Source: Styela clava
Lineage: Eukaryota
Direction of reading: 5' to 3'
DNA: 64,000 nt
NCBI RefSeq assembly: GCF_964204865.1
Contig: NC_135264.1
Location: forward strand, 4,960,001-5,024,000
Shown piece by piece: positions 52,820-61,672 of this stretch; position 1 is the stretch's first letter; each line of letters begins with the position of its first letter. The translations under genes and the position numbers were made by a program. The notes beneath the pieces are model-generated. The model was not told the DNA's origin. It saw only the letters and a list, made by a program, of their open reading frames with translations, and ran no database searches.

Positions 52820-53463
52820 CCGTAAAAGTAATAAGGAAATTTATGGGTTCCTGTTTTGGGACACCTTGTATATATACTTTTTAGAAGACGCCATGCGGCA
52901 AAACTAGTTTAGAAGAGTAGTTTCATATTTGCTTTGGTGAATATTATGTCCACAGAAAGAGTCGTCACAACTAATGAATTTCTGTGAATTTTTTATGAAT
53001 TTATGAAAATAATGAATTTTTACTTAGCATTACATCAAGTGGATAATTTTGTACAATCTACCATATTCAAAAAACAGTTCAATTAACAGCATGACAATTT
53101 ACACCTAGTCTCTACCATAAGGCTACGCTTTCAATCGAGCAGAGATTACATGGGACGCGGAATTAAAAAATGCCATTATTAGAATGACATGAATATCCTG
53201 ATAGGAACCAGAAAAATAAAACGTAACAAAAGGTCAGTAAGTATTAAGTTCATAACGGGTATAACAGTAATTAAATATATTAGTTGATGATTACGTTTCA
53301 CCAACAGTAAATTTACAAGAATAATGAAGTTGCATCAGTTATGAAATTGAAAATTTCATAGCATAAACATAAAAAGTTGGAAGTATGTCAAGCTACGATT
53401 TAAATTTTCTAAGCAGAGCAGTAGGCTACGCGAGCAAGAGCAATAGGTGTTAGGACAATTTTA

Positions 53464-54854
53464 CTACACTGGAGGTAAGTCGGAATCTTCCCTTTTATTT
53501 TCCCTCTTGCGTACCACAGAAACATTGTCAGTTCCAACCTGTCAATATAGAACACAATATAGAACCTGTCAATATAGAAGCGCTAAGTCATAACAAAGTC
53601 ATCTTCGGTTAGGATATCGGTAAATTCCCAAAGGAGTTTTTTCTGACATCTAGGACCAAGTCTCATGCGTCAAATGAATTTTGCGTATAAATATTATAAT
53701 TGGGGAATCCACACGAATAAAGAAAATGTGTGACCACTCCAATTTGCATTTTTTTTTAATATTTTTGTATAAAGGATATATTTAATTATTGCTAGAGATA
53801 TTCGGCGTCGTTAGTCAGTTGGTTGATGTGCCTTACTTAAATAGTTGCCTCGGAACTGCAGATCAGCTTAGTTTATATCATTAATCATCATTTTTATAAA
53901 ACCTCTGACTTATATGGATTTGTACTTTATAGTTTTTAAACAGATAGCTTCTAAAGTAACGTTTTATATAATTAGTTACCTGTACGTTTGAGTTATCACC
54001 ATGAATATGTACAATGTGCATTGCCTGAATGGATACTTTTTGGCCAGACGTACCTTCACCAACTAACGATTTATTATCTGGAGTCGCACATAGGTTTGTA
54101 TTACCAGAACATGACGAAACCAAGCCAGGTTCAGCAATCAAATCGTCAGAATTTGGTGGTAAATTTCTCAATTCGTTAACTCCGGTATCTACAGTTGCAT
54201 TAGGAGTTGCTGTCGAATTCTCGCGAGCGTAATCTCCCCTTGCTCTTTTCTGAACGCTAGCTATTGTCTTGGAGAGACGCATCTCAAAGAACAGATCCTC
54301 ACGTAGTGTGGTATAAGCATCAAGAGTCAGAGGAAGCCTTGAATGAAGATATTCCCTCGGTTGCACAGTAACAAATCGGATACCAAGATCACGTCTAGTT
54401 ATGGATGCATATTGGGCAATATGCCTAGCTGACTGCAGGATGCCTTTATCGTTTAACGAAGTCCTCGTAGCCAGCCATAGTACCATTTGTTGTTCACTCA
54501 CGAAAGACTCTATAGCCTCAAACACAGCTAGACCAGCGTCATAAAAATCACACATTTGTGCTTTACAACCATTCCTATTTAAGGCATCACATATGCGATT
54601 GGCAATTTGAATATCAGCATCTGCGTAGAAAAGTCCTGCTTTCAATTCATGTTCCTGCCAACAAAGATATGTTTAGAACAGGCTTATATATACACATTTA
54701 TCGCCACTGTCTCACTAAACGGTAAACCTATACAATATATTTAATTGCTGCTACAACTCACTTGATTATGTACTGTAAGCTGGTCGATTGATTGGTTGAC
54801 CGCTGGCTGACTTGAATTAGAGACTGACGCATCGTGGCTAATACCACTTGCCAT
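53464..54854 (-). CDS. TICAM/TRIF-like TIR-domain adaptor with C-terminal RHIM, 280 aa, 3 exons
   Basis: Phase-0 exons 54854-54762 (ATG preceded by in-frame TAA), 54654-53980 and 53538-53464. The TIR reads GLFYADADIQIANRICDAL..MCDFYDAGLAVFEAIESFV..MVLWLATRTS..IRFVTVQP..LDAYTTL..FFEMRLSKTI, following the TICAM pattern. The exon 2/3 junction gives IVHIHGDNSNVQ|VGTDNVSVV. Confidence 0.8.
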
Positions 54855-55261
54855 CACAAATTACGACCCAAACGTGAAGATTTCAGCAATGTATATACTT
54901 TCTGATAGATAAACTCTTGTCTGATTTTCATCGACAAGCTCGTTACGCATCGATAGTAAAGCAGAACTCTGTATTAACTCGTATCACGTGAATCATTACG
55001 TAACGCGTACTGACGTTCGGGACAGTTTTTTTTTTAAATCAATAAACCTTGTGTTTGACTCTTTTAGGGGCATATTCACTTTGCTGACACAGACAGTCCC
55101 CGAACTCGTAATAGACCTAAAATAAGGAAATTCAGAATAAACATATGGTCTAACCCTAACCTGGTATACAGACAACAGGAGCCCTTTTAGGACTTGATTT
55201 ATCTGAGTCGATAGCTTGTTTATATTATTCATTCTACATATTACGAAAAATTCCCTATACT

Positions 55262-60027: not shown

Positions 60028-61672
60028 TCAAAATTCACAGACAACACCATCACGCGCATTGTTTGGATCATAATTCCACATATTTTGAGGGGATGTGCTG
60101 GGATCTGGTCGAACTTGAAGGTTGATTTGAGTGTATGCCGCGTTTGCTGATGGGTAACCAGGGTACCATATCATGTACGGTGCTGATGTACCACCTCTCA
60201 GATAAACTTCACCGTCCTGAAACAAATATTAAATTGGTTTTTAAAAATAGGGGGGGCGCATGAAGATTTCAGAAACGAATACTTTTATTCGAATCGAAAT
60301 TAATCACGAGTCTTTTTTTCGCAATAGACATCCAATCACACAAGTAATCGAAAACATAGAATCCATCACTCAAACGGTTCACTGAGTGTTCATACCAAAT
60401 AAAATACCATGTTTAATCAAAACCTCATTAGGAAGAGAAGAGTCCTATGTCAGAATTGCATTTTGTGGCTCCAGTAAAAAAAATGACGAATTCACCTCGA
60501 CCTTTGGCGAACAATAAAAAAAAAGATGGAGGCAATTCGAAATTTTTGTCTAGACCGATTCCAATAATTTACTATTCGATTCCAAATGCCAGCCATAGTC
60601 GAAACGAATGCACGGCATTTCAAACAAATAGAAACTTGAACTAGTCATAATTATATTTCATAATACAGAGTTAAACAATGCTACAATTCTGCCTTAGATG
60701 TTTTAAAATTGGTCATAAATTTCCAAACGAAGTTATGCATTTACCGTTTTTTTGTATGTCATTCCAAGCCATGGTTCAATGTAGTATCTACCATCTGGAA
60801 ATACAGATCTAATGTATGAAGTTAATTTATCGTATTGTTCTTTGCTGTATATATTAGCGGGTTCGGCGCCAATTTTTTTGCATTCTTGTTTTGCTCTCAC
60901 ATAGTTCATCTTTTCAAAGGTCACAAAGAAACATATGTTATCATGTTTCACATGACACCAAGCTAAATAAAAAACAAATTGATCACAGTTAAAAAACGAT
61001 TCAATTCCACGAATAATTGCGATTTGAAATGTGGGAAATACCTTTCTCAAAACGATCCTCCAAATATTCCAGTCTTGGTAACAACTTCTGGAATTCTGTC
61101 AATTTAAAAAATAACACAATTCAAATATACGATACGATTTTTAACGTATTTTCACTATTTGAATACATTGAAATTATTATCTAGGATTTCGATGCTACTA
61201 GAATTGGAACTGAAACGCGAAGATGTCCAAGTCTCCTATCAATGGAAATACATATCATGTATAATTGAGCTTATAAAAGATAGATGACACCATGTCATAT
61301 ATGTATAAAACTCTTTATTTCAATTCTTAGAAGTAATAATGATTTTAAGTAGTTTAACACGGTGAATTTGTTAGACTCACCTGTTACGACTTTGTTCTGG
61401 ATTATCAACTCAATTCTGTCGTAATCTACGACTGCTGTTTCACCAGGTAGACCCTGTGGTCCAACGTCACCTTTGTTGCCTCGCGAGCCTTTTGCACCTC
61501 TTTTTCCAGGTCTACCCTGTGTTTTTGCTGTTTGGTTGTGTGTTAGAGACGTTTGGGATTCAGTCGTAAACACATCTTGAACGTCTTTACAAATCATATG
61601 ACGATCTATTGCTTGTGACGTGCGCCAACAAATAAGACACACCAAACTTTGTAACAAGTACAACTTCAACAT
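60028..61672 (-). CDS. collectin-like protein (signal peptide, short collagen, neck, C-type lectin domain), 3 exons
   Basis: Exons 61672-61381 (signal, 9 Gly-X-Y triplets GRPGKRGAKGSRGNKGDVGPQGLPGET, neck), 60962-60745 (C..ICFF..AKQECKKIGAEPANI..WLGM) and 60216-60028 (WYPGYPS..MWNY..VVCEF*). Confidence 0.9.

Follow-up and report, generated by a model that had tools for sequence, protein, structure and literature searches.

In the ascidian Styela clava we identified a gene whose most likely product is a TICAM-like TIR adaptor. As its one output module this protein would have a RHIM-like stacking tail that can be removed by alternative splicing, and its partner would be something other than RIPK1. 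We place the probability of this reading at about one half. It draws directly on the structure of the gene, the fold of the TIR domain, the conservation of both the tail motif and the position of the intron that divides it, and the narrow range of the family. The gene lies on the minus strand of the stretch of DNA that we analysed (64,000 nucleotides of contig NC_135264.1, hereafter the window), from 54854 down to 53464. The minus strand was read from 53200 to 55200 and the exons were translated separately, giving a three-exon model of 280 aa in which all junctions are in phase 0. Its features, in window coordinates, are the following.

54762 to 54854, minus strand: exon 1, with the ATG at 54854; 31 codons of poorly conserved residues that are predicted to be disordered.
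54655 to 54761, minus strand: intron 1, phase 0, with the donor GT at 54761-54760 and the acceptor AG at 54656-54655.
53980 to 54654, minus strand: exon 2, 225 codons covering the TIR domain, the linker and the first 14 residues of the tail motif; ends in ...NVQ.
54235 to 54648, minus strand: predicted TIR domain, residues 34-171, modelled at pLDDT >90.
54052 to 54053, minus strand: alternative donor GT, giving an exon end at 54054; used in the annotated isoform X2.
53980 to 54021, minus strand: first half of the RHIM-like motif, residues 243-256; a hydrophobic strand, Asn/Ser and the V-Q of the tetrad.
53539 to 53979, minus strand: intron 2, GT...AG, phase 0; separates the Q of the tetrad from its V-G, at a position matched in the paralogue.
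53536 to 53577, minus strand: duplicated 15-base acceptor unit, with copies at 53577-53563 and 53550-53536.
53518 to 53538, minus strand: second half of the RHIM-like motif, residues 257-263; the V-G of the tetrad, then T-D-N-V-S.
53464 to 53538, minus strand: exon 3, 24 codons and the stop codon TAG.

The donor of intron 2 (GT at 53979-53978) directly follows ...AAC GTA CAG, and the acceptor is the AG at 53540-53539. Reading through this donor gives NVQ-VTNY, whereas splicing gives ...IVHIHGDNSNVQ / VGTDNVSVV, where the slash marks the junction. The original prediction, that joining 53980 to 53538 produces a tail bearing VQVG, is correct to the base. Moreover, the joined 280-aa product matches the public protein P0001 at every residue. 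P0001 is XP_039257670, annotated as isoform X1 of Styela clava LOC120334261 and labelled "uncharacterized"; the match confirms the suspicion that the DNA came from a tunicate. P0001 was found by a search with exon 2 alone, and the P0001 record was used for all full-length analyses. The prediction had further described the motif as hidden across an intron. The tetrad is indeed split by an intron, but the spliced isoform X1 is already part of the NCBI annotation, where no domain or function has been assigned to it.

A tail-less product could arise by two predicted routes. The first is annotated by NCBI as isoform X2 (P0002, 234 aa), which ends in ...GEGWN because the donor after 54054 joins the acceptor at 53538, shifting the frame and dropping the whole tail motif. 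The second is unannotated and involves the upstream copy of the duplicated acceptor. Use of its AG at 53567-53566, 27 bases before the acceptor in our model, is predicted to yield NVQ followed by VLYCVLY and a stop codon, with loss of the tetrad glycine. Rfam gave no match within 50-58 kb of the window. Some 6 kb from the adaptor gene, at 60733-61672 on the minus strand, two open frames encode a collagen-like Gly-X-Y stretch and then a C-type-lectin-like segment; judged by eye from the translated sequence, this looks like a collectin-type (MBL-like) gene.

The annotation of an isoform without the tail would suit a different reading, in which the gene encodes a decoy or negative regulator. Here a TIR-only-like protein would cap TIR assemblies, as has been described for bbtTIRA and bbtTIRC of amphioxus, and the tail would serve turnover or localisation. 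The small size of the protein and its lack of any known output motif fit such a role, and amphioxus is reported to have inhibitory TIR adaptors (PMC6043800). However, conservation is as strong in the tail as in the TIR domain, which argues for a working module, and we give the decoy a low probability. It is in any case compatible with the preferred reading of an adaptor with a removable RHIM-like tail, as X2 could inhibit X1.

The evidence for a RHIM-like tail comes from the motif and its conservation. By the published definition, a RHIM comprises ~18-22 residues that contain the core tetrad (V/I)-Q-(V/I/L/C)-G, and in human RIPK3 the tetrad VQVG is the centre of three short strands (PMC9444067). 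A longer pattern has also been given, [IV]Q[ILV]GxxNx[MLI] (PMC9440496). The VQVG of the Styela clava adaptor, which is present only after splicing, falls within the core definition. The tail blocks of four members are given below, with a slash at the splice junction where one is placed.

Styela clava adaptor: MHIVHIHGDNSNVQ / VGTDNV
Orthologue P0003: NVLHIHGANSVIQIGSDSV
S. clava paralogue P0005: VYNIHITGANSTVQ / IGSGNQ
P0010: IYNINITGSNNNIQVGSGNQM

Relatives carry the tetrads IQIG, VQIG and IQVG (the last as IQVGSGNQM), and P0010 matches the longer pattern [IV]Q[ILV]GxxNx[MLI] exactly. The block follows one grammar, in which an alternating hydrophobic strand is followed by Asn/Ser, the tetrad and then G-x-x-N. 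The two S. clava paralogues are 44% identical over the TIR domain and 20% over the linker; identity rises again to 43% over the ungapped 21-residue motif. The motif is therefore a conserved island in a disordered tail. Within the open frames of this genome, [IV]Q[IVLC]G occurs only 5 times in 163,465 residues (~3 per 100,000), and ~0.003 tetrads are expected by chance in a tail of 110 residues. Because the tetrad is this rare, yet is found at the matching aligned place in several genes, we set a chance origin aside.

Profile and PDB sequence searches gave no RHIM match. Pfam RHIM (PF12721) had no match at E up to 10 in four members or at E up to 1 in 17 members, and searches of PDB sequences with family members recovered no solved RHIM chain. 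The proposed fit to the RHIM consensus thus stands as regards the tetrad definition and the conserved island, and does not extend to a match with Pfam RHIM or with solved RHIM sequences. Moreover, the tetrad is degenerate in some relatives, being replaced by ISIG in Clavelina and by IQQV in another relative. The tail is modelled at low pLDDT in both paralogues; three short strands that AlphaFold2 places at 246-263 in the adaptor have a pLDDT of ~50 and were given no weight. A complex prediction with two copies each of both paralogues' tails scored 0.02, which speaks neither for nor against assembly, and a protein atlas queried with the paralogue tail returned nothing usable.

The missing profile and PDB sequence matches, the replaced tetrads and the low-confidence tail models would all be in keeping with a lineage-specific TIR protein, whose tail would belong to a different class of short linear motif, such as a docking strand, a degron or a SUMO-interaction-like site, with a coincidental likeness to RHIMs and no amyloid. 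Against this, the block has the full RHIM grammar, down to the exact longer pattern in one relative, and it sits in a disordered tail, where a relative carries a Death domain. We consider this other-motif explanation unlikely, although it carries more weight than the decoy. We consider it quite probable that the tail forms a functional motif under selection. That it behaves as a true RHIM is a proposition on which we are evenly divided.

The second S. clava gene shares the position of the intron.

G000:C19:12447951-12449100 (locus L004, 1486-2621), plus strand: paralogue LOC120333959 (P0005, 247 aa), 7.4 Mb off on the same chromosome.

The TIR domain stands at the very start of P0005, whose tail has the sequence ...NIHITGANSTVQ / IGSGNQQIFDGNQQ. 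Exon 1 ends in ...ACG GTT CAG / GTGAGA and the coding sequence resumes after ...CACAG with ATT GGT TCT GGT AAT. This junction creates VQ / IG, as is found in the public protein P0005. A phase-0 intron between Q and the third residue of the tetrad is common to these two genes, which are 37% identical. In four predicted relatives (P0004, P0013, P0014 and P0019) the likeness to the family ends right after Q and the next residue is Val. As a Val at this place in all four is what reading through a GT donor would give, the tetrad intron probably predates the duplication in S. clava. The contig that carries the orthologue P0003 is 953 bases long, of which 870 code for its 289 aa, and the coding span of the S. 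clava gene is 1,391 bases with two introns. Since the P0003 contig leaves no space for introns, the simplest reading is that it represents a spliced mRNA with IQIG intact; so taken, it provides the sole transcript-level support for the spliced tetrad.

Upstream of the tail, AlphaFold2 modelled residues 34-171 with TIR topology at pLDDT >90 from an alignment of 17 relatives, and on the strength of this model we are close to certain of the predicted TIR fold. Pfam TIR_2 gave 18-19 bits with the adaptor (E 0.002-0.003), below its cut-off of 28, and reached E up to 1 in 6 of the 17 family members. Three family members were also searched singly against the PDB sequences, and neither a TIR nor a RHIM chain was recovered. 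Searching 177,635 PDB sequences with the family profile gave one match, the TIR domain of TRIF (2m1x), which at E 0.41 is not significant; the alignment covers the first strand-helix-strand and, in collinear order, the last helix.

Structural comparison pointed in the same direction. With Foldseek against the PDB, human TRAM (9dlg, E 1e-5) and TRIF (8rlm) took ranks 1-2, and ranks 8-10 were again TRIF/TRAM. With VIA-align, the adaptor matched TRIF 9dk8 at Z 15.0 (rmsd 3.2, 134 aligned), TRAM 9dki at Z 14.9 and TRAM 9dlg at Z 14.3. These were followed by SPARTA TIRs (13.8), MyD88 (12.8) and SARM1 (~12.3), with dozens of TIRs at Z >12. The model of the paralogue gave the same order at the top, with TRIF at Z 16.7 (rmsd 2.6, 133 aligned) and TRAM at 16.1, followed by Hydra TRR-2 (15.0), MAL (14.9) and MyD88 (14.2). 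Three measures agree and are consistent with a TICAM affinity of the TIR domain, by thin margins. The predicted TRIF-type TIR is in keeping with the fold and with TRIF/TRAM as the top matches of two paralogues, with the reservations that the lead over other TIRs is ~1-1.7 Z and that TIR_2 stays below its cut-off. Orthology of the adaptor family to TICAM is, in our view, rather less likely than not. When queried with the TIR part, the protein atlas returned bacterial TIR-named clusters at 0.91, which we treat as a lead only. An NADase-type TIR was also considered and was dropped; the alignment lacks the invariant Glu and the best matches are adaptor TIRs.

The family to which the adaptor belongs is small. 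Among 1.84 billion representative proteins, an exhaustive profile search recovered 17 relatives in total, and a word-indexed homologue search with the family alignment found no further relatives. All named members are ascidian, coming from S. clava and Clavelina lepadiformis. Searched against the S. clava genome, the family profile identified two loci; at least 15 ordinary TIR_2 exons are found elsewhere in the genome. As had been predicted, the adaptor is minimal. Pattern scans of 11 family members found no TRAF6 site, pLxIS motif or myristoylation glycine (residue 2 of the Styela clava adaptor is Ala), and Pfam found no TRIF N-terminal domain in the adaptor. The linker has a second conserved patch, N-L-P-P-N-S-D-D at residues 195-202 of P0001 and A-P-V/L-S-D in relatives, which matches no TRAF6, TRAF2 or pLxIS pattern.

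One Clavelina lepadiformis member (LOC143446390, P0012 / P0020) differs in having a Death domain ahead of the TICAM-like TIR (P0012, Pfam E 2e-9) and no RHIM-like tail. LOC143446392 and LOC143446397, whose gene numbers are close to that of LOC143446390, are further family members, and a tandem cluster is suggested. For amphioxus it has been stated that RHIMs are placed where death-fold modules usually sit (PMC4262963). The Clavelina member with a Death domain fits this rule, in support of the view that the tail is the output module.

Lastly, we searched for a partner of the tail. A TIR domain with a C-terminal RHIM-like tail is the layout of TRIF and of amphioxus bbtTICAM, and by structure no solved protein matches better than TRIF and TRAM. 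The adaptor might then be a true TICAM/TRIF orthologue, linking a RIP kinase to TLRs by way of RHIM-RHIM amyloid. Such a TLR-to-RIPK arm was also the weakest part of the original prediction. Fay et al. 2025 report no homologue of RIPK1 (kinase, RHIM tetrad and death domain) in tunicates (PMC12119088), and in our genome scans, whose reach stops short of mini-exons and long genes, no RHIM-bearing partner was convincing. Across 16 death-domain loci of S. clava there are 5 tetrads, none of them in a RHIM-like context. Pfam RHIM gave two chance-level matches against the S. clava genome, neither of which was convincing, and Pfam UPA gave no match in the partner hunt. The pattern N-x-x-[VIM]Q[VIM]G-x-x-N had 32 matches in the genome against 17 for the reversed control, with none in a clear coding context. 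Moreover, the adaptor is without the N-terminal domain, TRAF6 site and pLxIS motif of TRIF, and the TIR survey of Toshchakov and Neuwald 2020 reports that TRIF-like TIRs are absent in lancelet, lamprey and Ciona (PMC7075850). Coupling to a RIP kinase by a true orthologue of TRIF is thus improbable, and we continue with an adaptor whose tail would have another partner.

Two observations from the genome scans are recorded here. A stretch at G000:C14:4570399-4570431 on the minus strand (locus L001, 1342-1728) reads NISTNIQLGHNNTMSI and scores 16.6 bits with Pfam RHIM (genome E 4.3). It lies in an AT-rich, non-coding-looking frame of 128 aa with no clear splice sites and is probably a product of chance; it could be a mini-exon. 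The genome is also rich in NACHT exons, with at least 97 scored among 194 candidates, many of which are arrayed in tandem on contig 2. Dozens of near-identical NACHT open frames of 467 aa are spaced out over ~0-9 Mb of that contig (G000:C2), and others are found on other contigs.

Taken together, these data suggest a small cytosolic adaptor that would consist of a TIR domain, an unconserved disordered linker and a 21-residue RHIM-like tail. For receptor coupling, amyloid-type assembly and output, we infer the following sequence of events. The TIR domain would first join a TIR receptor or adaptor that has been activated, and would then polymerise as the TIRs of TRIF and TRAM do, concentrating the tails. 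A beta assembly of RHIM type would form as the tails stack, whether on one another, on those of the paralogue or on some other RHIM-like protein, and this assembly would relay the signal to a partner other than a RIPK1-type kinase. Splicing to isoform X2 would remove the tail and leave a TIR-only form, which would probably be inhibitory.

A broader hypothesis, which we find rather unlikely but worth stating, is that ascidians possess a RHIM-type amyloid branch without a RIP kinase, composed of minimal TIR-RHIM adaptors that signal by prion-like stacking and are switched on and off by splicing of the tetrad. Such a branch might be nucleated by the TIR domains of TLRs, or templated by RHIM-tailed members of the greatly expanded NLR set. 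If it exists, the TIR and RHIM core of TRIF would be older than vertebrates, and RHIMs would have come to TLR adaptors at a time when the lineage had as yet no RIPK1/RIPK3 necrosome.

Tunicates are the closest living relatives of vertebrates. A conserved ascidian family of adaptors with a TIR domain and a RHIM-like tail would bridge the step from TICAM of amphioxus to TRIF of vertebrates, and would call for a revision of the published statement of Kajava et al. that tunicates are without RHIM motifs (PMC4262963). A review of tunicate immunity mentions neither TRIF nor TICAM, and a literature search for RHIMs in tunicates found no further paper. The remark in the original prediction that TICAM is scarcely documented in tunicates is thus borne out, as the literature searched records neither RHIMs nor TRIF-like TIRs there. 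Moreover, a protein of 280 aa would be a very small and tractable system in which to study RHIM function without a RIP kinase.

Among known systems, MyD88 resembles the family through the Clavelina lepadiformis member, which has a Death domain and a TIR domain in MyD88 order. The Styela clava adaptor, however, is without a Death domain, and MyD88 TIRs rank below those of TRIF/TRAM (Z 12.8 for the adaptor and 14.2 for the paralogue). TRAM/TICAM-2 of vertebrates is likewise a small adaptor that is almost entirely a TICAM-type TIR, and it ties with TRIF structurally. It differs in carrying an N-terminal myristoylation glycine and no RHIM, whereas the Styela clava adaptor has a RHIM-like tail and no such glycine. 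The Drosophila IMD pathway (PGRP-LC, PGRP-LE and IMD) and the RHIM proteins of amphioxus offer a precedent for RHIM-type motifs outside the RIPK1/RIPK3 necrosome, located on innate-immune receptors or adaptors at the usual sites of death folds (PMC4262963). None of these joins a TIR domain to a RHIM in a tunicate.

Two further comparisons are with proteins that combine both modules. Amphioxus bbtTICAM is, like the ascidian protein, a TIR adaptor of an invertebrate chordate, and it is reported to activate NF-kB through its RHIM, independently of MyD88 and with no induction of interferon (summarised in PMC6043800). It is also reported to act through amphioxus RIP1, a kinase with no known counterpart in tunicates. 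TRIF/TICAM-1 of vertebrates is larger in its repertoire, with an N-terminal helical domain and pLxIS and TRAF6 sites that are missing from the 280-aa adaptor, which also has no Pfam RHIM match and shares just 14-19% identity with it in the TIR domain. The partners of TRIF in vertebrates are RIPK1 and RIPK3, which tunicates are reported to lack (PMC12119088). Nevertheless, both proteins join a TIR domain through a long disordered stretch to a C-terminal RHIM or RHIM-like motif with the tetrad (V/I)Q(V/I/L)G, and the TIR domain of TRIF is the best solved structural match to that of the adaptor (Z 15.0) and of its paralogue (16.7).
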